A DNA stretch of 64,000 nt from IMG/VR virus record IMGVR_UViG_3300032323_001214, positions 185,607 through 249,606 of that record. The stretch is one strand, 5' to 3'. A program made the position numbers and the translations under genes. A model generated the notes under the pieces. The model was not told where the DNA came from and searched no databases. It saw nothing but the letters and a program-made list of their open reading frames with translations. Of this stretch, positions 49,924 through 63,512 are shown in pieces (positions within the stretch are counted from its first letter, which is position 1; each line of letters starts with the position of its first letter).

Positions 49924-50190
49924 ATGTCAGATTACAACAGAACCTTTAATGGTGACGCAAAAATTAAACTAACACAATTAGTCAATGAGGGTATGACAAT
50001 CCTACATGAGATTGACACATTAAATGGTGGATTAAACGATACTATTAAAGCGGTTGCAGAAGAACTTGAAATCAAGGCTTCTACACTAAAGAAAGCAATT
50101 AAGATTGCACATAAAGCAAGTTTGGGTCAAACTAACAAAGACCACGATGAACTCAACACTATCTTGGAAACAGTCGGCAAAACTCTATGA
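49924..50190 (+). CDS. Small helical DNA-binding protein (DsbA/GapR-like, tentative)
   Basis: 88-aa all-helical pattern L.D.IKAVAEEL.I....LKKAI; immediately before the polymerase. Confidence 0.5.
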   Translation: MSDYNRTFNGDAKIKLTQLVNEGMTILHEIDTLNGGLNDTIKAVAEELEIKASTLKKAIKIAHKASLGQTNKDHDELNTILETVGKTL

Positions 50191-52904
50191 GTTATGTTGA
50201 TGCTATTCACAGTAGGGATGAAGACCGTATCTACGTTGTAGAACGGGACACTAACGGCAAGCGTCAATACAAAGAATATCCTACTAACTACGTATTATAC
50301 TACCCTGACCCTAAGGGTAAACATCGTAGCATCTATGGTGAACCAGTTAGTCGTTTCAGTACACGCAAACGACAAGAGTTTGAAAAAGAAAAGCGTATTC
50401 ATTCTGGCAAGAAATTGTATGAGAGTGATATCAACGTAGTCTTTCGTTGCCTAAGCGAAAACTATCTTAAAGTCGATGCACCTAAACTTCACACTTGTTT
50501 CTTTGACATTGAAGTAGACTTTGATCCTGATAAAGGATTCAGTCCTACTAGCGATCCGTTCAATCCTGTTACAGCTATCAGTTGTTATTTAGATTGGCTT
50601 GATCAGTGTGTTACTCTAGTCATTGCTCCCAAGCATATGACACCAGAGACTGCCAATGAGATTGTAAATGAATTTGAAAACACAATGCTTTTCAAAACTG
50701 AGAAGGAAATGTTTGACGTTTTCTTTCAACTCATTGAAGATGCTGATGTATTGACTGGCTGGAACTCAGAGGGCTATGATATTCCCTATATGGTCAATCG
50801 TGTTACTAGAGTAATGAGTAAGGATGACACACGCAAGTTCTGCTTGATGGGTCAACTACCTAAAGCTAGAGAATACGAACGATTTGGTAAGAGTGAAACA
50901 ACTTATGACTTAGTAGGTCGTATTCACTTGGACTATCTACAATTGTACAAAAAGTATAACTATGAATCACGCCACAGTTATAAACTAGATTCTATCGGCG
51001 AGATGGAAGTTGGTGAAAACAAAACACAATATGAAGGTACTCTTGACCAGTTGTATAACAAAGACTTTAAAAAGTTCATTGAATACAACAGACAAGATAC
51101 TATGTTGTTGGTAAAGATTCATAACAAACTTAAGTTTTTAGAATTAGCTAATCAACTTGCACATGAGAACACAGTACTGCTCCCAACAGTTATGGGTTCA
51201 GTGGCAATGATTGAGATGGCAATTTTTAATGAGGCTCACGAACGTGGGTTAGTTGTTCCAGATAAAAAACGAAAGGTTGAAAATGAAGAAGAAGTCCAGC
51301 AGGCAGCAGGTGCCTTCGTTGCTACTCCGAAACGCGGTATGCACGAATGGGTCGGTGCAGTTGACATCAACTCGCTCTATCCCTCGGTTATTCGTGCCCT
51401 CAACATGGGAGGAGAAACAATCGTTGCACAAGTTAGACAGACCCTCACAGACCAGTACATGAAAGACAAAGGCTTACGCCTTGCTATGGAAAAGAAACGC
51501 TACAAAGATGGCGATGACGATGTTACTGGTGCTATCTTATGGGAAGGTTTGTTTAGTTGTTTAGAATACACAGCAATCATGTCACAAGAACGTGGCACAA
51601 TACTATGGGTAGACTATGAAGATGGTCGCAGTGTAGAAATGAGTGCGGCAGAAATATGGAAGATGATCTTTGATAGTCATAAGCCTTATATGCTAAGTGC
51701 TAATGGCACAATCTTTACTTATGAAAAAGAAGGTGTTGTTCCCGGTCTACTAACTCGTTGGTATACAGAACGTAAAAGTATTCAGAAACAAGCAAAAGAA
51801 GCGTATGGTACTGATATGTATGAGTACTATGATAAACGACAACTTGTTCGTAAGATTTTATTGAACTCTGCATATGGCGCACTGTTGAACGAACATTGTC
51901 GTTTCTATGATAAGCGTATAGGTCAAAGTGTTACATTGAGTGGTCGTCAGATTGTTAAACATATGATGAGTCAAATCAATCAAACTGTTGCAGGTGAGTA
52001 CACCCATGAAGGCGAAGCTATCGTATATGGGGACACTGACTCCTGTTATTTCTCTGCATATACTACACTAAAGCCGCAAATCGATAAGGGTGAATTACAC
52101 TGGGATAAAGATTTGTGCATTGGTTTATACGATAGTATTGCTGACGAAGCTAATAACAGTTTTCCACAATTCATGGAGAAGGCATTTCATGCTCCTCGCA
52201 AGAACGGTGAGATCATCAAAGCTGGTAGAGAACTGATCGGTGATCGTGCCATCTTTATCACTAAAAAGCGTTACGCTATTAACATTTTTGATAAAGAAGG
52301 TAAACGTAAGGACAAAGAAGGACAGCTAGGTGATATCAAAGCTATGGGTCTTGACTTGAAACGTGCAGATACACCTAAATATGTACAAGAGTTTTTATTG
52401 AATGTATTGAGCATGGTCATTCAGCAAGGTAAGGGTCGTGACGAAGTTATCGAGGCAATTAAAGACTTTAAACGTATCTTAACAGCACAAGACAGCTGGA
52501 CTAAAGGTTCTCCTAAGGGTGTAAACAAACTCACATACTATGGTGACTTAGAATCTAAGAGTGCAACAGGTCGTGCTAACATGCCCGGTCACGTTCGTGC
52601 GGCATTGAACTATAATTACTTGCGCAGAGTAAATGGAGATCAATATAGTCAAAAGATTATTGATGGTATGAAGGTTATTGTTTGTAAACTTAAATCTAAC
52701 GCATTGGGTTTTACAAGCATTGCTTATCCCGTTGATGAACTTAGATTACCAAAATGGTTTATAGAGTTACCATTCGATGATGCTGAAATGGAAAAGACAT
52801 TGGTCGATGAAAAAATTGATAACTTGTTGGGTGTACTAGGATGGGATATTCGTAGTAGTACAGATACTAACAGTACGTTTGATGATTTATTTAGTTTCGG
52901 TTAA
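50187..52904 (+). CDS. Family B DNA polymerase with 3'-5' exonuclease (gp43-like)
   Basis: FDIEVD, WNS.GYD, YN..D exonuclease motifs; DINSLYPS, K..LNS.YG, YGDTDS, KKRY. Confidence 0.97.
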   Translation: MSYVDAIHSRDEDRIYVVERDTNGKRQYKEYPTNYVLYYPDPKGKHRSIYGEPVSRFSTRKRQEFEKEKRIHSGKKLYESDINVVFRCLSENYLKVDAPKLHTCFFDIEVDFDPDKGFSPTSDPFNPVTAISCYLDWLDQCVTLVIAPKHMTPETANEIVNEFENTMLFKTEKEMFDVFFQLIEDADVLTGWNSEGYDIPYMVNRVTRVMSKDDTRKFCLMGQLPKAREYERFGKSETTYDLVGRIHLDYLQLYKKYNYESRHSYKLDSIGEMEVGENKTQYEGTLDQLYNKDFKKFIEYNRQDTMLLVKIHNKLKFLELANQLAHENTVLLPTVMGSVAMIEMAIFNEAHERGLVVPDKKRKVENEEEVQQAAGAFVATPKRGMHEWVGAVDINSLYPSVIRALNMGGETIVAQVRQTLTDQYMKDKGLRLAMEKKRYKDGDDDVTGAILWEGLFSCLEYTAIMSQERGTILWVDYEDGRSVEMSAAEIWKMIFDSHKPYMLSANGTIFTYEKEGVVPGLLTRWYTERKSIQKQAKEAYGTDMYEYYDKRQLVRKILLNSAYGALLNEHCRFYDKRIGQSVTLSGRQIVKHMMSQINQTVAGEYTHEGEAIVYGDTDSCYFSAYTTLKPQIDKGELHWDKDLCIGLYDSIADEANNSFPQFMEKAFHAPRKNGEIIKAGRELIGDRAIFITKKRYAINIFDKEGKRKDKEGQLGDIKAMGLDLKRADTPKYVQEFLLNVLSMVIQQGKGRDEVIEAIKDFKRILTAQDSWTKGSPKGVNKLTYYGDLESKSATGRANMPGHVRAALNYNYLRRVNGDQYSQKIIDGMKVIVCKLKSNALGFTSIAYPVDELRLPKWFIELPFDDAEMEKTLVDEKIDNLLGVLGWDIRSSTDTNSTFDDLFSFG

Positions 52905-52981: not shown

Positions 52982-53713
52982 ATGAAAGATTATTTACAAG
53001 ATTTAATTCAACACACACAGGGTCTAGGTAATGTAGACTTGATTAAAGTCACTGGCACTGACCAAGAAACACAAATCAATGCAATCGCAGACGACAAATC
53101 TGTTATTGTAAGCGGTATTCTTGCGAGTCCTATCTCTGACTTCATTGGAGTATTTGGTATGCCTAACCTAGGCAAATTAAAAACTATTATAGGATTTGAT
53201 GATTACGACAAGGATGCTAAGATTAGCGTTGCTACTTCTAACAGAGATGGGGTAGATGTTCCTACTACGATTCACTTTGAAACTAAAGACGGTTCATTTG
53301 TTAATGACTATCGACTAATGAGCAAAGCAATTGTTGAAGAAAAAGTCAAAACCGTTACTTTCAAGGGAACAACATGGAATGTTGAATTTGAACCTACTAT
53401 TGCAGGCATTCAACGACTAAAGAAGCAAGCAAGTGCTAACAGTGAACAAGATCATTTTACAATGACTACTGTTAACGGTGACTTGAAGATTAACTTTGGT
53501 GACCCAAGTACTCACAGTGGTAACTTTGTATTTCACCCAACCGTCACTGGTTCGTTGAGTAAAACATGGAACTGGCCCGTTAAAGTATTCCTAGCTATTA
53601 TGGATCTGCCAGGTGATAAAACTGTGCGTGTTGCTGATGCAGGTGCAACTGAAATTACAGTTAACAGTGGTCTAGCAACATATCGTTATTTGCTTCCGGC
53701 TAATTCAAAATGA
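52982..53713 (+). CDS. Sliding clamp (gp45 / PCNA-like)
   Basis: 243 aa alternating beta/alpha pattern, C-terminal YLLPA, adjacent to PolB; clamp loader present in window. Confidence 0.6.
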   Translation: MKDYLQDLIQHTQGLGNVDLIKVTGTDQETQINAIADDKSVIVSGILASPISDFIGVFGMPNLGKLKTIIGFDDYDKDAKISVATSNRDGVDVPTTIHFETKDGSFVNDYRLMSKAIVEEKVKTVTFKGTTWNVEFEPTIAGIQRLKKQASANSEQDHFTMTTVNGDLKINFGDPSTHSGNFVFHPTVTGSLSKTWNWPVKVFLAIMDLPGDKTVRVADAGATEITVNSGLATYRYLLPANSK

Positions 53714-54078
53714 TTGATTATATCGTTGGTGGTGAGTACCTAAATGTTACTAGTAACAAAGGTGCTCAACCTTATATCAATATGTCTAGCAATCAGCCTA
53801 TGGTAGGAGCATTAAGTTATGATCCTAGTATTGGGCAGATGAAGGTCTACGATGGTAACAGCTGGATGAGTCTTGGAGGTGGTAGTGCTACTGTCAATAT
53901 GAGTCCAAACGCTATCACTATTCTCAAGTGGGCTGAAAAGAAAATGCTAGAAGAAGCTGAACGTGAACGATTAGCAGAAACTAATCCTACTATCAGAGAC
54001 TTAATGGATCAGATTAAGCAAAAAGAAGAACAAATCAAAATTGTTCAAACATTAATAAAAGAAGAAGAAAAAGTTTAA
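53710..54078 (+). CDS. Hypothetical protein
   Basis: 122-aa ORF coupled to neighbours. Confidence 0.7.
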   Translation: MIDYIVGGEYLNVTSNKGAQPYINMSSNQPMVGALSYDPSIGQMKVYDGNSWMSLGGGSATVNMSPNAITILKWAEKKMLEEAERERLAETNPTIRDLMDQIKQKEEQIKIVQTLIKEEEKV

Positions 54079-55670
54079 TGGAACAAGTAAATCTATCAGC
54101 AAGTCACAATGACGATTGGGCATTGTTCTTACCAGCAGTCAGTAGTTTTTATATCTCCGGCTTAGGTAAGCAACGTAAAGGCGAACAATATTTTGATCCT
54201 GCACGTATTCCTGCAAAGTTTAATGGTGATGTAGAGAAACTAAACTTTCTTAATAGTAAGGAAGGTCTCTACTATTACAAGTGGGGATTGTACAGTGCTG
54301 GTCATGCTAACTTAGATACAACAGTTAATGATCCTAGTGAGAGTATCATTAGAGAACGTGAAGCTGGCACATTTATGTTGGGTGACAGTGGTGGATTTCA
54401 GATTCTTAAAGGTCAATGGCCAGCTGATTGGAAAGATCCTAACTGCCCACGTGCTATGGTAAAACGTAAAGCGGTGTTAAACTGGATGGACACATACATG
54501 GATTATGGTATGTGTTTAGATATCCCATCACAATCATTGAGTACGTTTCATATGAAGGATCCTAAAACCATAGAAAAGGATTCAGAGGGTAAACCAATAC
54601 CCGGCACTGGTAAAAGTCTTCATGGCATCAGTACGATTGAAGAAGCTATTGCCGCTACACATATTAATAACGAATACTTTATTAAGAACCGTAATGGCAA
54701 ATGCAAGTTCTTAAATGTGTTGCAAGGTCGTAATCACACACAAAGTGATGACTGGTATGAAGAAATGAAGAAGTATTGTGATCCAAATATCTACCCAGAT
54801 AATCATTTTAATGGTTGGGCATTCGGTGGACAAAACAAGATTGACGTACACTTGATGTTGCGTAGACTTGTTGACATTATCCACGACGGATTGTTAGTTG
54901 AAGGCAAGCATGATTTGGTTCACTGTTTGGGTGTATCTATCTTAGAGTATGCTGTACTCTTCACCGACATTCAAAAAGCTATTCGCAAATATCATAACCC
55001 AAAACTTAAAATCACATTTGACTGTGCAAGCCCATTCTTTAGTGCGGCTAAAGGTCTAGCATACTTTAACAACAGTATTGAACACGATAAGAAATGGTCA
55101 TACAGTATGGAAAAGACTGCTGAGAAAAAGAGTTATGCCAACGATAATCGTAAGTACAGTGATGGGGTATTAGCTGATGGTATACACAAAATATTTACCG
55201 ATAGTCCTGTAACTGACCTTATGACCATGAAGGACCTTTGCTATCGCGGTCAAGGATTCATCGGTCAACATGGTAAAGAAACAAAGACTAGTTGGGATAC
55301 ATTAAGTTATACACTAGTACAAAGTCACAATGTTTACACTCACTTAAGTGCTGTACAAGAAGCCAATCGTAAATATGAACAAGGTATCATGCCAAAAATG
55401 GTTATGAATCAGTTTGATGACGAACATTTCGGTGAAATTGTAGATAAGATATTTGCACAAAAAGATAGACAAAAGAGTATATCTATGATAGAATCTCATA
55501 GTAGCTTCTGGATGCAAATGAAATCAGGTAGTCAAGGTTTCAGTGGTAAAAAAGCAATGAATGCTATGACTATGTTTGACCAATTATTTGATATAAACAC
55601 AGATGAATCGGAAGTTGATGAAATCATTGAAGATAGTGACGATGAGATTTCCAAAGTACTAGGAGAATAA
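54078..55670 (+). CDS. TGT-fold transglycosylase, DpdA-like (7-deazaguanine insertion)
   Basis: LGDSGGFQ, MCLDIP, VLQG, GWAFGG, HCLG, TFDCASP, HN motifs of the TGT/DpdA superfamily; folE and queD nearby. Confidence 0.75.
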   Translation: MEQVNLSASHNDDWALFLPAVSSFYISGLGKQRKGEQYFDPARIPAKFNGDVEKLNFLNSKEGLYYYKWGLYSAGHANLDTTVNDPSESIIREREAGTFMLGDSGGFQILKGQWPADWKDPNCPRAMVKRKAVLNWMDTYMDYGMCLDIPSQSLSTFHMKDPKTIEKDSEGKPIPGTGKSLHGISTIEEAIAATHINNEYFIKNRNGKCKFLNVLQGRNHTQSDDWYEEMKKYCDPNIYPDNHFNGWAFGGQNKIDVHLMLRRLVDIIHDGLLVEGKHDLVHCLGVSILEYAVLFTDIQKAIRKYHNPKLKITFDCASPFFSAAKGLAYFNNSIEHDKKWSYSMEKTAEKKSYANDNRKYSDGVLADGIHKIFTDSPVTDLMTMKDLCYRGQGFIGQHGKETKTSWDTLSYTLVQSHNVYTHLSAVQEANRKYEQGIMPKMVMNQFDDEHFGEIVDKIFAQKDRQKSISMIESHSSFWMQMKSGSQGFSGKKAMNAMTMFDQLFDINTDESEVDEIIEDSDDEISKVLGE

Positions 55671-55671
55671 T

Positions 55672-55884
55672 ATGCCATATGAACAACGTATAAAGATATT
55701 AGAAGAATCGCATAGACTAGTTGATAATCAATTGTTCCAATTAGAGAAGTCAGGTAGCAAAGATTCTGCTAAAATAAAATCTCTACAAGAAATAAAAGAA
55801 AAGTACCTAAGCGAACTACGTGTCTTGCGTAGGGCGCAATGGGATCATGACCACGAAACAGTTAACTTTGATGACGACCGATGA
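55672..55884 (+). CDS. Small coiled-coil protein
   Basis: 70 aa; L.E.H..VD..L..LE pattern; AGGAG SD. Confidence 0.65.
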   Translation: MPYEQRIKILEESHRLVDNQLFQLEKSGSKDSAKIKSLQEIKEKYLSELRVLRRAQWDHDHETVNFDDDR

Positions 55885-56336
55885 ACGAACAACACAATCA
55901 AGCAATTACGGAAAAACGAGTACGCATTAAGCATCATGCCAAGCGTATGATTTTTGTTACATTTCAAAAAGAGGGTATTCATATGTACCCAGCAGCGGCA
56001 ACAGATCCAGCACTTGCAACGGGTGATGAATATGATGTTAGCTTTTTAGGAACTCCACATCGCCATATCTTTCACTTTAACGTGGCGATTGAAGTATTTC
56101 ACAACGACAGGGATATTGAATTCATTCAATTTAAACGCTGGTTAGAGAATCTCTATAAAGGCGGTACACTTGAATTGAATTACAAGAGTTGTGAAATGAT
56201 TAGTGATGACCTCTATGAAGTTATTGCTACTCGCTATCCCGATCGTAACATTGAAATCACTGTCTCAGAAGATAATGAGAACGGTGCAACGATTTATTAC
56301 AACACAACCAAACCTTATCAACAACTAGCTATTTAA
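55881..56336 (+). CDS. QueD-like T-fold protein (second copy, divergent)
   Basis: EGIH.YP, HRHIFHF, DRDIEF, SCEMI, V.ED.ENG: His/His/Glu layout of the PTPS/QueD fold. Confidence 0.55.
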   Translation: MNEQHNQAITEKRVRIKHHAKRMIFVTFQKEGIHMYPAAATDPALATGDEYDVSFLGTPHRHIFHFNVAIEVFHNDRDIEFIQFKRWLENLYKGGTLELNYKSCEMISDDLYEVIATRYPDRNIEITVSEDNENGATIYYNTTKPYQQLAI

Positions 56337-56348
56337 AGGATTATTAAA

Positions 56349-56558
56349 ATGGCAAAACAACAATTTCAACCTAACCCACGCCTCCGTCAAATTTTTGAAG
56401 ACTTGGAAAAGTATCTTGCATTCTGTCAAGACTTTGGTTATAAATTTGACGAAGCAGAAATGTACAACATGCGTAGTTACGTGTATCGTCAATATAATAA
56501 ATTTGCAACTGGCAAGGGTGCAAAAGATCAATGGGCAGAACTACTTGCACGACCATGA
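56349..56558 (+). CDS. Hypothetical protein
   Basis: 69-aa ORF with AAGGA SD. Confidence 0.7.
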   Translation: MAKQQFQPNPRLRQIFEDLEKYLAFCQDFGYKFDEAEMYNMRSYVYRQYNKFATGKGAKDQWAELLARP

Positions 56559-57742
56559 GAAAATTATATTACATGGGTCTTGAACCCTACAAAGCAAGAT
56601 ATACTCTACAACTGCAAGAGTGGAATGTAGAAGTTTTCAAGCGTAGGAAAATCAAGTATGTAGTTGTACCCGGTGAGACACTAAGTAACGATCAAGCGAT
56701 TGTTACTGGGCAAGTATTAGATGCACATGGTCGTTCATATTTCGGTATGAGTCAAATGATGAATCTAGTTAAGATGATGAAAGCAGGGGAAGTTACCAGT
56801 GAAGATGTTATCTATTTTGAAGACATGTTTCAACCGGGCTTTGAAAGTTTGCCTTATATTCTTAATCAAGTTAGTGAAACACATCGCCCTAAAATATATG
56901 TCCGCTGTCTTGCGCAGTCAATCGATCCTGATGACTTTGTTCACGTTTGGGGGATGGCCAAGTGGATGGGTTCCTACGAGAAGATGGTCTGCGAAGCTGT
57001 TAGCCAGAGTGGTGGTGCGATCCTCGCGACTAATGAAGAAATGGTCATGAACATGAAGATTGCAGGTTGGGATGTACCAATCTACAATATCAGTGGTTTA
57101 GCATTTGGTAAGAGCGAAGTAATGAATAGAGTAAATAAAATTATTCCATTCCATGATCGCAAAAACCGAGTGGTATTTTCAGCACGATGGGATCAAGAAA
57201 AACAACCAGACTTCTATATGGATGTTATTGAGGGCTGGAATAAACGGCACCCAAACAACAATGTAGAATTTTGTATTTGCAGTGGTGCTAAACTACGTAG
57301 CAATAACGACAGTTACATGAAACGCACACATAATCTAGTTGAACGTGATCTATTGCGTATCTATGAGGATCTAGAAAAAGATGACTATTATGATATTGTC
57401 AATAATAGCCGTGTTGTGTTTAACTGTGCTTTACAAGATTGGGTGTCAAACACAGTATCAGAAGCAGATGCTCTTGGATGTAATGTATTGTATCCGGCGT
57501 ATCGTAGCTTCCCTGAAACGTTTGCTAACGATCCGGAAAGATTATACATTCCATGGTCTGTAACAGATGCATTGGATAAACTTGAAAAGTTATTGAAGAA
57601 ACCCCATACTGATATCGGAAAAATAAGTGATTACAACAACGGTACAATTGATCGTATTGTTGATATCCTTCAAGGCAATGGACAGAGTATGTTGAGAATG
57701 TCCACTGACTATAGAAAACATACTCGCAATTCTAAATTTTAA
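56555..57742 (+). CDS. GT-B fold glycosyltransferase
   Basis: ARWDQEKQP and QDWVSNTVSEA.ALGC..L.P...SFPE (GT4-like C-terminal motif). Confidence 0.75.
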   Translation: MRKLYYMGLEPYKARYTLQLQEWNVEVFKRRKIKYVVVPGETLSNDQAIVTGQVLDAHGRSYFGMSQMMNLVKMMKAGEVTSEDVIYFEDMFQPGFESLPYILNQVSETHRPKIYVRCLAQSIDPDDFVHVWGMAKWMGSYEKMVCEAVSQSGGAILATNEEMVMNMKIAGWDVPIYNISGLAFGKSEVMNRVNKIIPFHDRKNRVVFSARWDQEKQPDFYMDVIEGWNKRHPNNNVEFCICSGAKLRSNNDSYMKRTHNLVERDLLRIYEDLEKDDYYDIVNNSRVVFNCALQDWVSNTVSEADALGCNVLYPAYRSFPETFANDPERLYIPWSVTDALDKLEKLLKKPHTDIGKISDYNNGTIDRIVDILQGNGQSMLRMSTDYRKHTRNSKF

Positions 57743-57751
57743 GGAGAAAAT

Positions 57752-57946
57752 ATGAGCGCACATAATGATATTGAAACAAGTTTGGCAACATACAATGCTG
57801 AGAATGATAAGTTTAACAAAGGTAATGCGGCAGCAGGTACACGTGCCCGTAAAGCATTAGCAGAACTAGCAAAAGCAGTTAAAGCACGCCGTAATGAAAT
57901 TACAGCAGAAAAAGCCGCACGTGCAGAAGCAAAAACTAAGGCTTAA
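57752..57946 (+). CDS. Histone H1-like Hc1-type nucleoid protein
   Basis: KGNAAAGTRARKAL.EL....K..R.EI. Confidence 0.7.
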   Translation: MSAHNDIETSLATYNAENDKFNKGNAAAGTRARKALAELAKAVKARRNEITAEKAARAEAKTKA

Positions 57947-57948
57947 TC

Positions 57949-58191
57949 ATGGCTCGCAAGAAGATTCAACTTGGAGAAGTGATCTCATTGCCTACATCAA
58001 TAGAAAAGGGTAGTCACTTAACTGTGACTACCTTTCCTGATGGTCGCACTGAATTAAAATGGGATGATGAAGCACTGCTTAGTGAAGTAAGAAATGCTAT
58101 ACTAAAAGCAGAAAGTGTTATGCCCGTGACGAATGAAGTCAAGCCTGCAGTTAAGGCTAAATCAAAAAAATCAGTTACTAAATCAAAGTGA
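57949..58191 (+). CDS. Hypothetical protein
   Basis: 80-aa ORF in operon. Confidence 0.6.
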   Translation: MARKKIQLGEVISLPTSIEKGSHLTVTTFPDGRTELKWDDEALLSEVRNAILKAESVMPVTNEVKPAVKAKSKKSVTKSK

Positions 58192-58256
58192 TAAATACTT
58201 GTGCTACACAACGGTAGCACAATGTCAAAACAAAACCATCACAAAGGAAGGTTATC
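58190..58256 (+). promoter_or_regulatory. Late box plus hairpin leader of folE
   Basis: GATAAATA then GTGCTAC-ACAACG-GTAGCAC stem-loop. Confidence 0.5.
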
Positions 58257-58943
58257 ATGAGTTATAATAAAACAAAAACAGACCCAGAGTTGGGCAAACA
58301 AGTTCACTTACATTTATTGAACATGGGTGTAGAAACACCTATCGATGACACAATTTATTTGGGTGATCGCAAAGAAAGAATTGAAAAGATTGAAGGTCAT
58401 TTCAAAGCCATCATGGAAACAATGGGTCTTGATTTGTCCGATGATAGTCTAATTGAGACACCTAAACGTGTTGCTAAGATGTATATCAATGAAATCTTTT
58501 GGGGGCTTGACTATGAAGCGTTCCCTAAATGTACAACAGTTGACAACAAGATGCAATACAATGAAATGGTTGTAGAGCGTAATGTTAATGTTCAATCTAA
58601 CTGCGAACATCATTTTGTAGTCATTGACGGATTGGCTACTGTAGCTTATGTCCCTAAACAAAAAGTTTTAGGGCTTAGTAAGATTAACCGTATTGTAGAA
58701 TATTTCAGTAAGAGACCTCAAATTCAGGAACGCTTAACAGAGCAAATATTTCACACCTTACAGTTCATCCTTGATACAGAAGATGTTGCAGTTATGATTG
58801 ATGCACAACACTATTGTGTTAAGAGTCGTGGTGTAGAAGATACGGGTAGTAGCACAGTTACTTGTCGCTTAGGTGGCGGATTCAAAACAGATCCTGCGGC
58901 ACGTGCAGAGTTCTTGCAGATTGCCAACAAAGGCTGCAAATGA
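58257..58943 (+). CDS. folE: GTP cyclohydrolase I
   Basis: ETPKRVAKMY, SNCEHHF, GLSKINR, RPQIQERLT, HYCV.SRG. Confidence 0.97.
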   Translation: MSYNKTKTDPELGKQVHLHLLNMGVETPIDDTIYLGDRKERIEKIEGHFKAIMETMGLDLSDDSLIETPKRVAKMYINEIFWGLDYEAFPKCTTVDNKMQYNEMVVERNVNVQSNCEHHFVVIDGLATVAYVPKQKVLGLSKINRIVEYFSKRPQIQERLTEQIFHTLQFILDTEDVAVMIDAQHYCVKSRGVEDTGSSTVTCRLGGGFKTDPAARAEFLQIANKGCK

Positions 58944-59071
58944 GTACTATACTTATTCTAGTTATAGTAGCTGTTATTGTGATTAGACTTAATCGTTTAC
59001 TTCCAAAGAGTAGTTGTACAGGTGATTGTAATCAAGGACGCAACTGTGACTGCAAATACAAACAACCTTAA
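58940..59071 (+). CDS. 43-aa membrane-anchored Cys-rich peptide
   Basis: Hydrophobic N-terminus then CTGDCNQGRNCDC; ATGA overlap with folE stop. Confidence 0.6.
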   Translation: MSTILILVIVAVIVIRLNRLLPKSSCTGDCNQGRNCDCKYKQP

Positions 59072-59072
59072 C

Positions 59073-59312
59073 ATGACAGCCAACGAGGCTAGGGCATTCA
59101 TTCGTAAAGTAATGGGCCCTACTCGAAGAATATTAGAAGGTAATGAGCGTGAACATATGCTTACTGTGTTCAGTTTAGTAGAGCCTATTAATGTTAGCAA
59201 CAACCAAAGGTCATTCACTGAAGAATATGAACATGCAGGTAAGAAATATGATGTTCATTATTTTGAAGACGAGACAATAGTAGAGGAAATATTGCCAGAT
59301 GATTTTCAATAG
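59073..59312 (+). CDS. Hypothetical protein
   Basis: MTANEARAFIRK start right after the previous stop. Confidence 0.6.
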   Translation: MTANEARAFIRKVMGPTRRILEGNEREHMLTVFSLVEPINVSNNQRSFTEEYEHAGKKYDVHYFEDETIVEEILPDDFQ

Positions 59313-59766
59313 GATTAAAGAATTAAAACATCAAGGGCTAAGAATAGGTATAACTTTTAGTCAATTTGATTTATTACACGCAGGACATGTCGCAATGCTT
59401 AGTGAAGCTAAGAATCATTGCGACTATCTCATTTGTGGATTACAAAACAATGCTAGTTGGGATCGTCCTGAAAAGAATGCACCTATTCAAAGTATTGTAG
59501 AAAGACAAATTAGTTTATCTGCCGTTCGATTTGTAGATGAAATCATTATATACAACACAGAGAAGGATCTAGAAGATATTCTACTTACACTTCCAGTTGA
59601 TGTTCGTATACTAGGGGTAGAGTATATGGAAAAAGATTTTACGGGTCGTGCTATCTGTGAGAAGCGAGGTGTTGAATTAGTATTCAACGGACGTGACCAC
59701 AGTTTTAGTAGTTCAAGTCTACGCAAACGTGTAGCAGAAGCTGAACAAAATAAAAGGATACAGTGA
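59299..59766 (+). CDS. Cytidylyltransferase (TagD-like)
   Basis: FDLLHAGH, ER...L.A.RFVDE, R.H.FSSS.LR. Confidence 0.85.
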   Translation: MIFNRIKELKHQGLRIGITFSQFDLLHAGHVAMLSEAKNHCDYLICGLQNNASWDRPEKNAPIQSIVERQISLSAVRFVDEIIIYNTEKDLEDILLTLPVDVRILGVEYMEKDFTGRAICEKRGVELVFNGRDHSFSSSSLRKRVAEAEQNKRIQ

Positions 59767-60065
59767 TGAACAGCTATGATGACTTTCTGAATAGGTTTAG
59801 AGTTCGAAACGTACAAGTATCACGAGACTATGATTACAAAAATTTCAACTATAATTATAATCAGACTGCAAGTTATTACGCTGACCGTGAAGAACTTATC
59901 GATATGCAACTTTCACGAGATGGGTTTGAACAATTGGTCAATGTAGACCGTGAGTATGATTTACTAACCCAAAACCAGCGTGATGAAGCATGGATGCGTA
60001 GACAATACCCGGCGATCAAAGAAGCGTATGAAAAATATTTAATGTTATTGGAGTTATACAGATGA
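59763..60065 (+). CDS. Hypothetical protein
   Basis: 100-aa ORF, coupled. Confidence 0.65.
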   Translation: MMNSYDDFLNRFRVRNVQVSRDYDYKNFNYNYNQTASYYADREELIDMQLSRDGFEQLVNVDREYDLLTQNQRDEAWMRRQYPAIKEAYEKYLMLLELYR

Positions 60066-60853
60066 AACGAATTTTAATTATGGGCTTGCCGGGTGCAGGC
60101 AAAACTTATCTAGCACAACATGTACTAGAACATTTACAAAACGAAAAGAAAAAAGTGGGTTGGCTCAATGCCGATGATGTTCGTAAAAAATACAACGACT
60201 GGGATTTTACTGAAGCAGGACGCATACGTCAAAGTTTACGTATGCGTGAACTAGCAGATGCAATGACCGAGTATGATTATGTTATCTGTGACTTTGTTGC
60301 ACCATTAGTTGAAATGCGTAATAACTTCAAGGCAGATTGGACTGTATGGGTTGACACTATCGACAAAGGTCGATACGAAGATACCAACAAAGCCTTTATT
60401 CCACCAGAAGTCTATGATTTCAGAATCACAGAACAACACGGTGAAAAGTGGGGAGAGTTTATTGCTGCACACATTTTAGATGATAGACGCAGACCAGTAT
60501 TTGATTGGAAAAAAGAAACTGTTCAAATGCTAGGTCGTTGGCAACCATGGCATCAAGGACATCGTAAGTTGTTTGAACGTGCTATTGCTAAAACTGGGCA
60601 AGTTGTTATTCAAATCCGTGACTGTCAAGGATGGCAAGGAAGTAATCCATTTGCTATAGAACAAGTAAAGAATTTTATCAAACGTGATTTAGATATGTTA
60701 TATCAAGGTCAGTATGAGATTCAAATTGTTCCAAATATAGTAAATATTACATATGGACGTGATGTTGGATACAAGATTGAACAAGAAGTGTTTGATGATG
60801 CTACACATAGTATTAGTGCTACCAAAATTCGAAAACAACTGGGGATGCAATGA
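60062..60853 (+). CDS. Adenylylsulfate-kinase-like domain fused to HIGH-family nucleotidyltransferase
   Basis: GLPGAGKT, LNADDVR...DF...GR.RQ..R (CysC-like); GRWQPWHQGH and SISATKIR. Confidence 0.7.
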   Translation: MKRILIMGLPGAGKTYLAQHVLEHLQNEKKKVGWLNADDVRKKYNDWDFTEAGRIRQSLRMRELADAMTEYDYVICDFVAPLVEMRNNFKADWTVWVDTIDKGRYEDTNKAFIPPEVYDFRITEQHGEKWGEFIAAHILDDRRRPVFDWKKETVQMLGRWQPWHQGHRKLFERAIAKTGQVVIQIRDCQGWQGSNPFAIEQVKNFIKRDLDMLYQGQYEIQIVPNIVNITYGRDVGYKIEQEVFDDATHSISATKIRKQLGMQ

Positions 60854-61608
60854 TTGCTCATAGAATCTGTATTATTTGTTTACCTAGAACAGGTAGTCAG
60901 TTATGTGAACAATTAGCTAGTGAGGTAACCTCAGGAATTCAATTGGGTGAGTATTTTGAAAATTGGAATCGTAGCGAATACGTTATACATAATGATAATA
61001 TAAAATTAAAAAATTTTGTGAGTATAGCGTCAAGATTTAAATTGTTTGAAAATTTTCAGGAAAGACTTGATTTATTAAAAAACACAGATATAAATCAGCC
61101 ACTAACTCTGAGAATATTTTTAATGGATCATTATGATAAAACTACATTATCTAATATAATAATAGAACTAAAAAATATAGGTTTTGAATTTATCACATTG
61201 ACAAGAGATATAAAAGAACAATTACTAAGTTACATGATTGCCCGCACATATGAACAAAATATGCAAAATGTGTTTGATATTAATAGCGAAATAAATAAAC
61301 CTGTACATATTAATCTTAATCATTTGAATAGCGTGTTAAATCAAATTTATGTTAGTCATCTGTTATGGGAAAAAAATCTGTCTATACTATTACAAAATAT
61401 TGAATACCAAAAAGTAAAATATGAATCTATCTATTCGGACATGGAAAAAATCTATAATACAAAATTCAAATATTTGGGAGAAAAATCTATAAAAACTGAT
61501 CCATTTGATTTAATTACCAATAAAGAAGAAGTTATGCGTTTTTTATCAAATAAAATAAGCGGTCTTGGCGTCATTCCCGCTTTACAAACTCTGCCGCCTG
61601 TGCTATAA
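60850..61608 (+). CDS. Sulfotransferase-like protein
   Basis: LPRTGS 5'-PSB-like loop, E.F, I.LTR....Q.LS, V.YE; very AT-rich. Confidence 0.55.
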   Translation: MIAHRICIICLPRTGSQLCEQLASEVTSGIQLGEYFENWNRSEYVIHNDNIKLKNFVSIASRFKLFENFQERLDLLKNTDINQPLTLRIFLMDHYDKTTLSNIIIELKNIGFEFITLTRDIKEQLLSYMIARTYEQNMQNVFDINSEINKPVHINLNHLNSVLNQIYVSHLLWEKNLSILLQNIEYQKVKYESIYSDMEKIYNTKFKYLGEKSIKTDPFDLITNKEEVMRFLSNKISGLGVIPALQTLPPVL

Positions 61609-61620
61609 TTAACATAGGAG
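61557..61620 (+). ncRNA. Candidate preQ1-I-like riboswitch / structured leader of queD
   Basis: AAGCGG/CCGCTT stem, 14-nt loop, A-rich linker, loop GGCG complementary to downstream CGCC, CCTGTG/CATAGG hairpin over the SD. Confidence 0.45.
61581..61609 (+). promoter_or_regulatory. Possible sigma70-type promoter overlapping the queD leader
   Basis: TTTACA-17 nt-TATAAT with TG extension. Confidence 0.55.
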
Positions 61621-61626
61621 AAAAAC

Positions 61627-62154
61627 ATGGCAAAATATCTTTCAACAAAAACTTACGGTAACGACAGGGGTCTGAGTTGCTGTTTTAGACAATGGCGAAG
61701 TACACATAGTCATTGCAGTTTGTTACATGGATACTCAATTGGTATCAAACTAATCTTTGAATCAGAAACACTAGACGACCGCAACTGGGTTATGGACTTT
61801 GGTGGACTCAAAGCATTTAAAGAATGGGCTGATTGGCAATTCGATCACACAATGGTCATCGCTAAAGATGATCCTGAGCGTGGTACGTTTATAGAACTAA
61901 ACAAAATACAAGGCGGCTTCAAAAACATGGGAATTATTGATCTACGTATTGTAGATGGCGTAGGATGTGAAAAATTTGCAGAACTAGTTTACAAAACTAT
62001 GAATGAAATCTTGGGTGCATACCAAGCAGGTATAGGTTGGATACATCCAGATGGTAGAATCTTTGAAGCACGTTATCCAGTGGGACAAGGTGTTCACCTA
62101 CGTTCAGCAGAAGTGTTTGAACATGCTGGTAACTCAGCAGTTTACGAAGGATAA
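61627..62154 (+). CDS. queD: 6-carboxytetrahydropterin synthase
   Basis: SHCSLLHGYS, WVMDFGGLK, FDH, CE.FAE, V.EH..NSA.Y. Confidence 0.9.
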   Translation: MAKYLSTKTYGNDRGLSCCFRQWRSTHSHCSLLHGYSIGIKLIFESETLDDRNWVMDFGGLKAFKEWADWQFDHTMVIAKDDPERGTFIELNKIQGGFKNMGIIDLRIVDGVGCEKFAELVYKTMNEILGAYQAGIGWIHPDGRIFEARYPVGQGVHLRSAEVFEHAGNSAVYEG

Positions 62155-62155
62155 T

Positions 62156-62812
62156 ATGTTAGAAACAATTTGCGACACACTAGTTGAAGCATACAGACGC
62201 AACTGGATAACCAGTCGTGATGGCAATGTAAGTATTCGTCATCACGACCGTGATCACTTTTATATCACACCTAGTGGCGTCCGTAAGCAAACTATGCAAC
62301 CTGATCAGTTCAAGAAGATCAGCATTGACAAAAGTATACACAGTGGCTTTGGTTCTGCCGCTTTTAACTATAGCTGGCAAGACTTGCCGTATACCGATAT
62401 CAGTGCTAATCTAAAGCCTAGTGGAGAGATTCCATTGCATTTTGGACTTCAGCGTGAAATGGGTCAACATAAAAACGATGTTCGTGTAGTGGTACACTTG
62501 CATCCTACTTACTGTGTTGCCGCTATGCATCGCGGTATTGAATTGAGCAGTCTTGCCAATGACTTTCCTGAACTTAGTCGCTACACAAAAGTAGCGCCTA
62601 ACGTAGGAGATGTACCACCTATAAGTCAAGAACTTGCCGATCGGTGTCATGAAAATCTACAGTTAGATGATTGCGGTAATGTTAAATATGATATTGTCGG
62701 TATCAAGGGTCACGGAGTAGTTGCTATTGATACTAGTCCATGGCGAGCCTTTGAACATATTGAACGATTAGAACATATTTGTCAAATTGTATTGGCATCA
62801 GGAAAATATTAA
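62156..62812 (+). CDS. Class II aldolase / adducin family protein
   Basis: DGNVSIR, ITPSG, PSGE..LH, VVHLHP, GHGVVA. Confidence 0.9.
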   Translation: MLETICDTLVEAYRRNWITSRDGNVSIRHHDRDHFYITPSGVRKQTMQPDQFKKISIDKSIHSGFGSAAFNYSWQDLPYTDISANLKPSGEIPLHFGLQREMGQHKNDVRVVVHLHPTYCVAAMHRGIELSSLANDFPELSRYTKVAPNVGDVPPISQELADRCHENLQLDDCGNVKYDIVGIKGHGVVAIDTSPWRAFEHIERLEHICQIVLASGKY

Positions 62813-62822
62813 GGAGAAAATT

Positions 62823-63512
62823 ATGATTGAAACAACTTATGAAAATGGAACGTCATATCGTTCTGCTAGTGAACTTAATTCAGCAATGGGTCGTGTCTAC
62901 GGGCATATGAGCCTTGCTGTTATTGTATCAATGTTTGTCAGTTACTTTGTGGGAACTAGCCCAGAGTTGCTGGCATTCTTTTTTACAGGCGTTATGAAGT
63001 GGATTGTGATATTTGCACCACTAGCGGCGATCTTTGGTGTTAGCTATGTACTAGGCAATAATCCCAGTAAGAGTGTAGCACAGTTATGCCTGCATGGATT
63101 TGCAGCATTGATGGGATTGAGTTTTGCTACAATATTTGCCATATTCAATATGGGCAGTATAGTTAGTGCATTTATGGGTGCTGCTATCTTGTTTGCTATA
63201 ATGAGTGTATATGGATACTTTACTAAACAAAGTTTAGACAGTGTTGGCAAGTTTATGTTTGTAGGATTAATTGCTATCATTATTGCCAGTATTGTTAACA
63301 TCTTTATTGGTAGTACTGTAATGCAAATGGTCATTAGTGCATTAGCTATTATTATCTTCCTTGGACTAACAGCTTATGATACGCAAAAGATTCGAGAAGA
63401 ACTCAGTGTAGAAGCCAGTGATGTTGCTGAAGTCCGTGGCGCACTAACATTGTATATGGACTTTATCAACTTGTTCATTAACCTGTTACAACTTTTTGGC
63501 GATAGAAAATAA
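62823..63512 (+). CDS. Bax inhibitor-1 / YccA family membrane protein
   Basis: Seven hydrophobic segments; LTAYDTQKI and AL.LY.DFINLF..LL. Confidence 0.9.
   Translation: MIETTYENGTSYRSASELNSAMGRVYGHMSLAVIVSMFVSYFVGTSPELLAFFFTGVMKWIVIFAPLAAIFGVSYVLGNNPSKSVAQLCLHGFAALMGLSFATIFAIFNMGSIVSAFMGAAILFAIMSVYGYFTKQSLDSVGKFMFVGLIAIIIASIVNIFIGSTVMQMVISALAIIIFLGLTAYDTQKIREELSVEASDVAEVRGALTLYMDFINLFINLLQLFGDRK

Follow-up and report, generated by a model that had tools for sequence, protein, structure and literature searches.

Phages and bacteria exchange guanine in DNA for 7-deazaguanine derivatives. In the DpdA1/DpdA2/bDpdA preQ0 systems, an enzyme of the tRNA-guanine transglycosylase (TGT) superfamily exchanges guanine in DNA for a 7-deazaguanine made from GTP through FolE, QueD and QueE (Hutinet et al. 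2019, PMC6884629; PMC10164549). These systems need QueC (preQ0), and their DpdA proteins are recognised as TGT homologues. Cellulophaga phage phiST instead encodes DpdA3, DpdL, FolE, QueD and QueE without QueC, and its DNA contains 2'-deoxy-7-deazaguanosine (dDG) (Cui et al. 2023, PMC10516641). Here, DpdL is the proposed decarboxylase of 7-carboxy-7-deazaguanine (CDG), an activity that has been proposed but not demonstrated. Neither PMC6884629 nor PMC10516641 mentions a glycosyltransferase.

Sugars on phage DNA are described on pyrimidines, where phage GT-B enzymes modify a base after replication, as with the T4 alpha- and beta-glucosyltransferases (AGT and BGT) on 5-hmC and with glycosylated 5-hydroxycytosine (PMC13326640), and where sugar-nucleotide genes diversify between relatives. 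A sugar is not known for any purine in DNA. In actinomycete secondary metabolism, however, huimycin/dapiramicin biosynthesis uses a clustered glycosyltransferase, HuiG, to put GlcNAc on the 2-amino group of a FolE/QueD/QueE-derived 7-deazaguanine base (PMC7439116). That pathway goes through QueC/preQ0 and O-methylation, and has no transglycosylase or DNA target. Here, we describe a giant freshwater phage that carries, beside its DNA polymerase, a predicted 7-deazaguanine DNA-modification module linked to a glycosyltransferase.

Results

We first asked which genes make up the locus. The analysed window is a 64,000-nucleotide stretch (positions 185,607 to 249,606) of the 249.6-kb virus record IMGVR_UViG_3300032323_001214. 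The original prediction listed, next to polymerase and clamp genes, a long TGT/DpdA-like gene, a divergent T-fold protein, a GT-B glycosyltransferase, folE, a cytidylyltransferase, queD and a class II aldolase, and all seven genes are present where it placed them, so its observation is confirmed (Table 1). It had missed an APS-kinase-like/nucleotidyltransferase fusion, a probable sulfotransferase and an Hc1 histone-like gene. The aldolase most likely starts at 62156 rather than at 62051, because the longer open reading frame overlaps queD by about 100 nt, and relatives and gene calls give 218 aa.

Table 1. Features of the module and its left flank (window positions), with supporting evidence.
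Position	Strand	Length (aa)	Assignment	Evidence
50187..52904	+		Family B DNA polymerase (PolB); context only, conserved left neighbour of the module	PF00136 and PF03104; upstream in 73 of 80 related loci
52982..53713	+	243	Sliding clamp (PCNA/gp45-like)	No Pfam hit; phrog_12062; ESM Atlas neighbours are PCNA/gp45 clamp clusters, structural TM about 0.75; in 79 of 80 loci
53710..54078	+	122	Conserved small protein of unknown function	No family hit; homologue at the same position in 35 of 80 loci
54078..55670	+	530	DpdA-like transglycosylase, divergent predicted TGT fold; proposed DNA guanine/7-deazaguanine exchange enzyme	No Pfam, PHROG, NCBIfam or PDB sequence hit; GDSGGFQ motif; structural evidence in text
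55672..55884	+	70	Small protein of unknown function	Sub-threshold Pfam hit only; homologue at the same position in 17 of 80 loci
55881..56336	+		DpdL homologue, QueD-like T-fold protein; proposed CDG decarboxylase	phrog_17812, E 1e-34; 34% identical to phiST DpdL CGPG_00067 over its whole length, E 3e-16; LxxxHRHxF signature; 63-83% identical across 32 loci
56531..57742	+	395 from 56555	GT1, GT-B (GT4-like, retaining type) glycosyltransferase; the gene caller starts it at 56555, after a 69-aa ORF at 56349-56558	Pfam Glycos_transf_1 below cut-off (22.2 vs 26.4 bits); AlphaFold2 pLDDT 87; R219, K224 and E311 invariant
57752..57946	+	64	Hc1 histone H1-like DNA-binding protein, inside the cluster	PF07432, E 1.9e-12; same position in the close relatives L012, L013 and L016
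58257..58943	+		FolE, GTP cyclohydrolase I	PF01227, E 1e-61; NF006824 320 bits and TIGR00063 243 bits, both above cut-off
59299..59766	+		Small cytidylyltransferase-fold enzyme (glycerol-3-phosphate / ethanolamine-phosphate cytidylyltransferase-like)	PF01467; PDB matches 3elb and 1coz, E 1e-11; in close relatives but in only 2 of 80 distant loci
59763..60065	+	100	Small protein of unknown function	No family hit; homologues in L012 and L013
60062..60853	+	263	Fusion of APS-kinase-like P-loop kinase (N-terminal) and NMNAT-like nucleotidyltransferase (C-terminal)	PF01583, E 4e-11, residues 4-91; CTP_transf_like/NMNAT models at residues 153-241; phrog_10255 'kinase' over the full length
60850..61608	+	252	Probable PAPS-type sulfotransferase (weak evidence)	No Pfam hit for the protein itself; nearest Atlas clusters Stf0/Sulfotransfer_3, score 0.97, 202 shared features; Sulfotransfer_3 the commonest weak hit among homologues (7 of 27); invariant N-terminal P-R-x-G-S loop
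61627..62154	+	175	QueD-like 6-carboxytetrahydropterin synthase	PF01242, 49 bits, above cut-off; phrog_2389 QueD-like, E 2e-32; 36% identical to phiST QueD; CxxxHGY instead of CxxxHGH
62156..62812	+	218	Class II aldolase/epimerase-family protein	PF00596, E 2.6e-29, 103 bits; no specific equivalog model reaches its cut-off; 218-aa gene call on the identical contig

To identify the 530-aa protein, which gives no PF01702 match, we predicted its structure with AlphaFold2 (pLDDT 88.5). The top 50 Foldseek matches of the model are all TGT/QTRT1/ArcTGT enzymes (E about 1e-7), and VIA-align gave Z 19-20 over about 300 residues. The family keeps the DSGGxQ and FDxASP motifs, and D103, S104, G106, Q108, D148, H282, G285 and D315 are invariant. 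DSGGxQ, D148 and the FDxASP Asp line up with the TGT motifs in a weak QTRT1 profile alignment, although the equivalence to the catalytic Asp residues D102/D280 of TGT rests on motif alignment rather than on a residue-level superposition. Its relationship to phiST DpdA3, a 259-aa protein, is only marginal (hhalign probability 33%). Hence, the long protein is a TGT/DpdA-type enzyme by fold, belonging to a divergent DpdA-like subfamily.

Because the closest solved structures are all tRNA enzymes, and the genome encodes a TilS-like tRNA-modification domain, we considered whether this protein might act on tRNA. A protein target, resembling the deazaguanylation of Cap10 in type IV CBASS, is also conceivable, as a TGT-family enzyme that modifies a protein is described (bioRxiv 10.1101/2025.04.06.647259). 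However, the phage TGT relatives studied so far all act on DNA (PMC6884629, PMC10516641). We found no conserved Cys cluster for the zinc site in this family and detected no PUA-type tRNA-binding domain, the position within the replication module is conserved, and restriction data for the related phage PA5oct point to DNA. A tRNA or protein target is therefore very unlikely.

We next asked how the deazaguanine precursor would be made. The T-fold protein, which the original prediction treated as a divergent extra, is a homologue of phiST DpdL and carries its published signature motif. Neither queE nor queC was found in the window or in the 249.6-kb record. The original prediction had suggested that both might lie outside the window or be supplied by the host, and for queE the first of these holds. 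A 348-kb contig that is 100% identical to the window over the 13,151-nt overlap encodes QueE 2.4 kb past the window end, next to a phage MetK, together with a second glycosyltransferase (GT2) and a GalE-like epimerase. In contrast, QueC is absent from the phage's own record, from 31 loci with at least 9 kb of flank, and from five complete phage genomes that carry the same module. QueC is thus not merely out of view, and the pathway branches at CDG rather than going through preQ0.

To test whether the linkage of these genes is conserved, we compared gene neighbourhoods across related loci. In 46 of 46 diverse metagenomic loci with at least 3.5 kb of downstream sequence, the DpdA-like gene comes with both DpdL and GT1. 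The order PolB, clamp, DpdA-like, DpdL, GT, FolE, (PRT), QueE is kept in loci whose DpdA-like proteins are only 32-42% identical to this one. Much of this co-occurrence lies within one broad lineage with conserved synteny, so shared descent inflates it. Nevertheless, the link also holds in the cultured phages PA5oct, Phosso, ACP17, Xanthomonas X1 and BUCT-ZZ01. DpdL-GT adjacency persists in Phosso, where the DpdA-like gene has moved, and in other phage families, namely ACP17, X1/BUDD, BCSR5 and cyanophage BUCT-ZZ01, whose GT1 is 62.5% identical. In ACP17, the GT gene sits between dpdA and dpdL. A relative that has a QueC-like gene lacks both DpdL and GT. The cytidylyltransferase, the APS-kinase-like fusion, the sulfotransferase-like protein and the aldolase are, in contrast, lineage-specific accessories outside the conserved core, and the accessory sugar genes vary between close relatives.

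The Pseudomonas jumbo phages of the PA5oct/MIJ3 group (Wroclawvirus) offer a close comparison. They share the gene order PolB, clamp, DpdA-like (33% identical), GT (family-level homologue), DpdL (59-62% identical) and QueE, and they also encode TilS. PA5oct DNA behaves as G-modified. PA5oct has a PRT gene and a truncated epimerase in the module, and lacks the cytidylyltransferase, the kinase fusion, the sulfotransferase-like gene and the aldolase. In the papers we could read, its DpdA-like, GT and DpdL genes are annotated as hypothetical, and no DpdA was named for it.

The PRT gene raised the possibility that the deazaguanine enters DNA before replication, with a phosphoribosyltransferase making a nucleotide that is reduced, phosphorylated and used by the phage polymerase, leaving the TGT-fold protein a secondary role. 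A small Pribosyltran/XGPRT-like gene lies in the module in PA5oct, in BUCT-ZZ01 and in 21 of 80 loci, and the module always sits beside the polymerase. However, no such gene was found in this phage's 249.6-kb record, PRT could equally salvage the guanine released by base exchange, and the TGT-fold enzyme is universal in the module while PRT is not. We consider this route very unlikely.

Compared with phiST, the locus follows the same biosynthetic logic, with FolE, QueD, QueE and a DpdL homologue, no QueC, and a TGT-superfamily protein beside the replication genes. It differs in its 530-aa transglycosylase and in the GT4 glycosyltransferase, an obligate neighbour here that is absent from the phiST locus. 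The MazG-like gene beside phiST dpdL is not seen in this window.

Finally, we examined the glycosyltransferase. Although its Pfam match is below the curated threshold, as is support for the sulfotransferase assignment, the GT1 model matches retaining GT4 enzymes in Foldseek, including MshA, BshA, PimA, glycogen synthase, SenB and LmbT. T4 AGT and BGT are not among its top 50 structural matches. The invariant R219, K224 and E311 are catalytic-type residues, and GT1 therefore looks active by sequence and predicted structure. A structure-based test for a GT-DpdL complex gave no answer. The enzymes with small-molecule acceptors that dominate these matches (MshA, BshA, LmbT and SenB, with the tetrahydrobiopterin glucosyltransferase at rank 50) could suggest that the genes make a soluble glycosylated 7-deazapurine or pterin, perhaps a huimycin/dapiramicin-like or biopterin-glucoside-like inhibitor or cofactor. 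HuiG glycosylates a free 7-deazaguanine base, and FolE plus a PTPS-family enzyme also start pterin pathways. Yet a conserved TGT-fold base-exchange enzyme heads the module, the module sits between the polymerase/clamp and the primase/helicase across lineages, PA5oct DNA behaves as G-modified, and QueE, which commits the pathway to deazapurines, is conserved. A soluble product is thus improbable.

Discussion

Taken together, the locus is likely a phage DNA-modification module of the DpdA/DpdL kind that replaces guanine with a 7-deazaguanine derivative made by the QueC-less, CDG-branch route. Three steps are supported by homology: FolE converts GTP to dihydroneopterin triphosphate, QueD converts that to 6-carboxytetrahydropterin, and QueE converts that to CDG. 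Two further steps are inferred, in which the DpdL homologue would process CDG, with decarboxylation to 7-deazaguanine proposed, and the 530-aa TGT-fold enzyme would exchange guanine in duplex DNA for the product after replication. The DpdA/DpdL kind of system is already known; this one has a divergent DpdA subfamily and an integrated glycosylation arm that the papers we searched do not describe.

The original prediction, which inferred a further-decorated deazaguanine, for example a glycosylated one, or a different pterin-derived base, is partly supported: the TGT-type fold, the conserved linkage and the external queE hold, whereas its readings of the T-fold protein, of QueC and of the accessory genes need correction. 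Glycosylation of the DNA base is a tentative inference from gene linkage, made without nucleoside chemistry from any phage with this module, and we judge it slightly less likely than not. In this view, GT1, together with GT2 and the GalE-like epimerase just past the window, would add sugar to the deazaguanine, either on the free base or in DNA. Plain 7-deazaguanine has no obvious O or N handle at C7, so the acceptor site is a guess. The exocyclic N2 is one candidate, with huimycin as a chemical precedent.

Alternatively, the module may make plain dDG exactly as in phiST, with the glycosyltransferases and sugar/sulfate genes serving another purpose, such as glycosylating a different DNA base, virion proteins or the host envelope, or with GT1 in a non-catalytic or chaperone role in the DpdL step. 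phiST contains dDG without a GT of this family, and several DpdL-bearing phages gave no hit to this GT, so it is not needed for dDG as such. Vibriophage VP1 carries fully substituted 7-deazaguanine (bioRxiv 10.1101/2025.10.29.685425), and the lack of an obvious acceptor and the variable sugar genes also fit this reading. Against it stand the DpdL-GT adjacency kept across phage families and after rearrangements, the retained GT1 residues, and the failure to reconstitute dDG without the GT for ACP17. In addition, no hydroxymethylase that would provide a pyrimidine acceptor was found in the record, which is incomplete; its only thymidylate-synthase-family hit is a canonical ThyA (354 bits). We regard this alternative as unlikely, though it remains the strongest competitor.

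If the glycosylation inference is correct, the final base would be a glycosyl-7-deazaguanine rather than plain dDG, and the lineage-specific cytidylyltransferase, APS-kinase-like fusion, sulfotransferase-like protein and aldolase may tailor the donor or the glycan. The likely benefit to the phage is protection from restriction enzymes and from defences that recognise plain 7-deazaguanine.

Gene content and boundaries of the proposed modification locus

We first asked which genes make up the locus and where it ends. The window is the last 64 kb of a 249,606-nt IMG/VR virus record that CheckV rates 67% complete, and the modification locus is therefore cut off by the contig end, 1.2 kb after the aldolase gene. 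All ORFs are on the + strand and tightly packed. Family searches confirmed the family B polymerase, FolE, the cytidylyltransferase-fold protein, the QueD/PTPS-family protein and the class II aldolase-family protein, and the gene set listed in the original prediction was indeed present. The aldolase start was moved to 62156, because the longer ORF overlaps queD, while relatives and an independent gene call give 218 aa. The 243-aa protein that follows the polymerase has no Pfam hit, but groups with PCNA/gp45 clamps in the ESM Atlas.

Three genes had been missed: an APS-kinase-like/nucleotidyltransferase fusion, a 252-aa probable sulfotransferase and an Hc1 histone-like gene. The nearest Atlas neighbors of the 252-aa protein are Stf0/Sulfotransfer_3 clusters (score 0.97), Sulfotransfer_3 is the commonest weak Pfam hit among its homologues, and its N-terminus carries an invariant P-R-x-G-S loop. 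A profile of this family searched against PDB gave no sulfotransferase hit, and the assignment therefore remains a lead. We also considered whether this protein could be a divergent QueE, but there was no meaningful similarity, and this reading was rejected. The kinase fusion is directly followed by the sulfotransferase-like gene, suggesting phage-encoded PAPS supply plus sulfation, although the close relative L016 (a related locus) keeps the fusion and lacks the sulfotransferase-like gene. A megablast search of the locus against 50,697 phage records returned no match.

Features of the window, of its own record, of the identical contig (L183) and of related loci
Feature	Coordinates	Size	Evidence and remarks
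TilS-like protein	window 49279-49875	198 aa	Matches only the N-terminal PP-loop domain of TilS (tRNA lysidine synthetase), TIGR02432 125 bits; a phage TilS was noted as unusual in PA5oct-group phage MIJ3 (PMC6892783)
Family B polymerase	window 50187-52904		Intact in the window
Hc1 histone H1-like protein	window 57752-57946	64 aa	PF07432; embedded in the modification cluster, same position in close relatives
FolE	window 58257-58943		TIGR00063, 243 bits
Small cytidylyltransferase-fold protein	window 59299-59766
APS-kinase-like P-loop domain fused to an NMNAT-like nucleotidyltransferase	window 60062-60853
Probable sulfotransferase	window 60850-61608	252 aa
QueD/PTPS-family protein	window 61627-62154		PF01242, 49.2 bits against a cut-off of 22.4; phrog_2389 'QueD-like'
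Class II aldolase-family protein	window 62156 (start)	218 aa
Bax1-I/YccA-family membrane protein	window 62787-63512		PF01027, E 1e-51; in relatives directly after GT1 instead, so it moves around within the cluster
phrog_3704 protein labelled 'ferredoxin'	window 63512-64000 (cut by the contig end); L183:12663-13295	210 aa in full	92-99% identical across more than 80 contigs while its neighbors differ, so far more conserved than the surrounding genes
D-amino-acid-dehydrogenase-like flavoprotein, radical SAM/SPASM protein and phage MetK flanking queE	L183:13288-17511	SPASM protein 362 aa	SPASM enzyme found in none of the other loci fetched
QueE	L183:15547-16395	282 aa
Tandem radical SAM array	own record G000:C1:108666-123518	393-539 aa each	About 11 paralogous genes, all on one strand, none QueE-sized
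Rieske protein, PP-loop protein and fatty-acid desaturase (locus L001)	own record G000:C1:7410-9934	PP-loop protein 306 aa	Near the start of the record; weak QueC hit at 8775-8963
PolB of PA5oct	L010:2605-7831		Split by a Hef-like homing endonuclease gene
PolB of the 33%-identical relative L098	L098:2265-5592		Split by a nucleoside 2-deoxyribosyltransferase-family gene
Genes following the DpdA-like gene of L098	L098:8452-10845	QueC-like protein 301 aa	Myo-inositol-1-phosphate synthase, a small 111-aa protein and the QueC-like protein
GT1 compared with cyanophage BUCT-ZZ01	L180:9001-10167		62.5% identity to its counterpart

A divergent protein with a predicted TGT fold

We next examined the 530-aa protein, which has no hit in Pfam, PHROGs, NCBIfam or PDB sequences. 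A six-frame scan of the record with the tRNA-guanine transglycosylase (TGT) model PF01702 was empty at E up to 10. Its family is nevertheless very large, with more than 6,900 proteins at E up to 0.001 among the 8,000 candidates scored in the metagenome search and 836 representatives at 50% identity clustering. An AlphaFold2 model built on 46 diverse homologues is confident (pLDDT 88.5, pTM 0.86), with the C-terminal 47 residues disordered. The top 50 Foldseek matches in PDB are all bacterial, archaeal or eukaryotic TGTs (TGT/QTRT1/ArcTGT, probability 1.00), and VIA-align gives Z 19-20 over about 300 aligned residues. The predicted fold is thus a TGT-type (beta/alpha)8 barrel, in a family that standard HMM annotation does not see.

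To locate potential functional residues, we aligned the family in two sets of 46 and 16 sequences. D103-S-G-G-x-Q108, D148 and D315, the last within an FDxASP motif, are invariant in both, and H282 and G285 are invariant across the family. In a marginal profile hit to QTRT1 in PDB (E 1.6), the first two motifs align with DSGGFQ and the LD motif. The catalytic and substrate-binding aspartates of Z. mobilis TGT are D102 in DSGGFQ, D156 and the nucleophile D280, and we read D315 as the counterpart of the nucleophile by motif resemblance rather than by residue-level superposition. No invariant or nearly invariant Cys cluster is found in either alignment, and none is visible after D315 in the sequence, suggesting that the structural zinc site of TGT (CxCxxC...H) has been lost.

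Among the described DpdA subfamilies (bDpdA, DpdA1-4), the direct comparison covered phiST DpdA3, against which the family profile scores only 33% probability with hhalign. The profile relates at 96% to the ACP17 protein gp123 and at 92% to a 416-aa protein of BUCT-ZZ01, members of a group of 416-424-aa proteins that sit in the same kind of locus. ACP17 is a phage for which Cui et al. (PMC10516641) mention a dpdA. We therefore treat the 530-aa family as a divergent, long DpdA-like subfamily, whatever its relation to the published DpdA3 set. Consistent with a DpdA-type context, FolE, QueD and QueE lie in the same block in this phage.

A DpdL homologue and a proposed pathway without QueC

The 151-aa T-fold protein is phrog_17812 and is a homologue of phiST CGPG_00067, with 34% identity over its whole length (BLASTP, 123 columns, E 3e-16). 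Cui et al. named that protein DpdL and proposed it as the decarboxylase that converts 7-carboxy-7-deazaguanine (CDG) into 7-deazaguanine. The protein here has exactly their diagnostic LxxxHRHxF motif (L-G-T-P-H-R-H-I-F) in place of the CxxxHGH of QueD, and H60, R61, H62 and F64 are invariant in 32 homologues. It is the most conserved gene of the module, at 63-83% identity across loci whose DpdA-like proteins are only 32-42% identical. In the QueD-like protein, TIGR03367 (QueD) scores 37 bits, below its cut-off of 89, and the motif reads C-S-L-L-H-G-Y, so that the last His is Tyr.

Neither queE nor queC is in the window or the record. Searches of the record for QueE with PF04055, the PA5oct QueE and the QueE of a close relative recovered only the unrelated tandem radical SAM array. 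However, an ENA contig of 348,244 nt (L183; ERZ28594331 scaffold_7) is identical to the window over 13,151 nt with no mismatch and continues past its end. In order, it carries the full form of the gene cut by the window end, the flavoprotein, the radical SAM/SPASM protein, QueE, MetK (480 bits), a second glycosyltransferase (GT2, 442 aa) and a GalE-like epimerase. The five best NCBIfam hits of this QueE are all QueE models (E 1e-14 to 1e-9), but all are below the curated cut-offs; it is 78% identical to the QueE of a relative and 33% identical to the annotated PA5oct QueE. Hence, QueE lies 2.4 kb beyond the window, one of the places where the original prediction had supposed it might be.

QueC is a different matter. 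None was found in 31 related loci with at least 9 kb of flank, and none scored above cut-off in the complete genomes of PA5oct, Phosso, BUCT-ZZ01, ACP17 and X1. The weak QueC hit in the record covers only the PP-loop N-terminus of the 306-aa protein beside the desaturase and the Rieske protein, and it has no similarity to the QueC-like protein of L098; it is not a QueC. The pathway is therefore inferred to stop at CDG and to continue through DpdL, the pattern that Cui et al. associated with 2'-deoxy-7-deazaguanosine (dDG).

Conserved linkage of DpdL and a glycosyltransferase

To determine how the module is organized in related phages, we fetched 80 IMG/VR loci whose DpdA-like proteins are 32-42% identical to this one. 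The order PolB, clamp, (p122), DpdA-like, (p70), DpdL, GT, FolE, (PRT), QueE recurs, where p122 and p70 are small proteins of 122 and 70 aa and PRT is a small phosphoribosyltransferase. Of 46 loci with at least 3.5 kb downstream, all 46 have DpdL and all 46 have the glycosyltransferase (GT); of 31 loci with at least 9 kb downstream, 27 have QueE, 23 have FolE and 17 have the PRT. PA5oct-group jumbo phages have the same arrangement. These loci share ancestry, so the count overstates independence.

The DpdL-GT pair nevertheless survives rearrangement and transfer. In Sinorhizobium phage Phosso the DpdA-like gene sits 170 kb away, yet DpdL, GT, FolE and QueE remain together beside a polymerase and clamp. 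The order is DpdA, GT, DpdL, QueE in Acidovorax phage ACP17 and GT, 'queuine tRNA-ribosyltransferase', DpdL, QueE in Xanthomonas phage X1, and Burkholderia phage BCSR5 has GT and DpdL within about 3 kb of each other. The T4-like cyanophage BUCT-ZZ01, a cultured member of the Kyanoviridae, has QueE, PRT, QueD, FolE, GT2, DpdA-like, DpdL, GT1. Its GT2 is 38% identical to that of this phage. Its GT1 is 62.5% identical to that of this phage, while the DpdA-like proteins of the two phages are related only at profile level, which suggests recent exchange of parts of the module between unrelated freshwater phages.

The 33%-identical relative L098 has FolE, QueE, a QueC-like gene and an inositol-1-phosphate synthase next to its DpdA-like gene and lacks both DpdL and GT, a different and also undescribed variant of the module. 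The Cellulophaga phiST group has DpdL without this GT, and several other DpdL-bearing phages gave no GT hit. Such phages bear on the main rival explanation, in which the module makes plain dDG and the GT does something else; we consider this rival possible but unlikely.

A predicted GT4-like glycosyltransferase

GT1 scores below the Pfam gathering cut-offs (Glycos_transf_1, 22.2 bits against 26.4; Glyco_trans_1_2, 21.7 against 25), but its AlphaFold2 model (pLDDT 87) has a two-Rossmann-domain GT-B fold closest to retaining GT4-type enzymes. Foldseek matches include MshA, BshA, PimA, glycogen synthase and TarM (E 1e-12 to 1e-9, TM up to 0.67), as well as SenB and LmbT, with the tetrahydrobiopterin glucosyltransferase at rank 50. 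Many of these act on small-molecule acceptors. R219, K224 and E311 are invariant across 38 sequences from two GT1 subfamilies that are only about 20% identical, and the consensus of the PA5oct-like subfamily shows E-x7-E. By inference, these residues are the phosphate-binding Arg/Lys and the Glu of the EX7E region, and on this sequence evidence the enzyme is very likely active. A structure-based prediction of a GT1-DpdL complex gave no answer and is not evidence either way. The only hints to donor and acceptor are GT2 and the GalE-like epimerase on the identical contig, and a GalE-like epimerase or another SDR sugar enzyme also sits next to GT1 or GT2 in several distant loci. We considered 5-hmC or 5-hmU as the acceptor of GT1 and rejected this reading, since the only thymidylate-synthase-family gene found in the incomplete record is a canonical ThyA (354 bits).

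Interpretation in light of published work

The only indirect evidence for exchange of guanine in duplex DNA for a 7-deazaguanine base comes from a published observation on PA5oct. PA5oct virion DNA resists five restriction enzymes, from which the authors inferred a modified G; they noted QueE and PTPS homologues, but named no DpdA and reported no mass spectrometry for it (PMC12191111). Cui et al. expressed dpdL plus dpdA from phiST and from ACP17 in E. coli, found no dDG, and suggested that other enzymes may be needed; in ACP17 the GT gene lies between those two genes. A chemical precedent exists in huimycin, where the clustered glycosyltransferase HuiG attaches GlcNAc to the 2-amino group of a 7-deazaguanine base (PMC7439116). 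Defenses that recognize modified guanine, namely END nucleases and Dag glycosylases (bioRxiv 10.1101/2025.10.29.685425), give a plausible selective reason to decorate the base further. Our searches found no paper describing a glycosylated deazaguanine in DNA or a glycosyltransferase in dpd loci.

Taken together, the core reading is a QueC-less 7-deazaguanine DNA-modification module of the DpdA/DpdL kind, which is well supported by predicted fold, motifs, homology and context and which we consider likely. The gene content, the motifs, the DpdL homology, the position of QueE and the linkage of DpdL with GT come directly from the sequence comparisons, whereas guanine exchange in duplex DNA by the 530-aa protein, CDG decarboxylation by the DpdL homologue, the roles of the invariant residues, and the donor, acceptor and product of GT1 are inferred. 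The extension, that GT1, and in this lineage GT2 with its accessory sugar and sulfate enzymes, acts on the deazaguanine so that the DNA base is glycosylated, rests on conserved linkage, an apparently active enzyme, a failed reconstitution without it and a natural-product precedent. We hold it tentatively, as somewhat less likely than not. The interpretation in the original prediction is partly supported. A soluble metabolite, a tRNA or protein target, and a pre-replicative nucleotide route remain as minor rivals. Compared with what is published, the QueC-less DpdA/DpdL logic is already known, while the long, divergent DpdA-like family and the integrated glycosyltransferase are what differ.

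In the furthest reading, which is possible but again less likely than not, these phages, including cultured PA5oct, ACP17, Phosso, Xanthomonas X1 and cyanophage BUCT-ZZ01, would carry a glycosylated 7-deazaguanine in their DNA, with CDG processed by DpdL, sugar added by GT4 enzymes, and insertion by a new long DpdA subfamily; in this lineage the base may be further tailored, for example sulfated. This would be the first sugar-bearing purine in any natural DNA, and would name the missing enzyme in the failed dDG reconstitution of Cui et al., offering a concrete reason why dpdA plus dpdL alone did not suffice. Every glycosylated DNA base described in the papers we searched is a pyrimidine, no glycosylated purine base in DNA is known to us, and the 7-deazaguanine modifications described so far carry only small groups: cyano, amido, aminomethyl, methyl, formyl, carboxy or none. 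The module is very common, and occurs in large freshwater phages and in therapy-relevant Pseudomonas jumbo phages. The idea bears on how phages escape defenses that recognize modified guanine, and a conserved glycosyltransferase built into the deazaguanine module points to an undescribed class of purine hypermodification.
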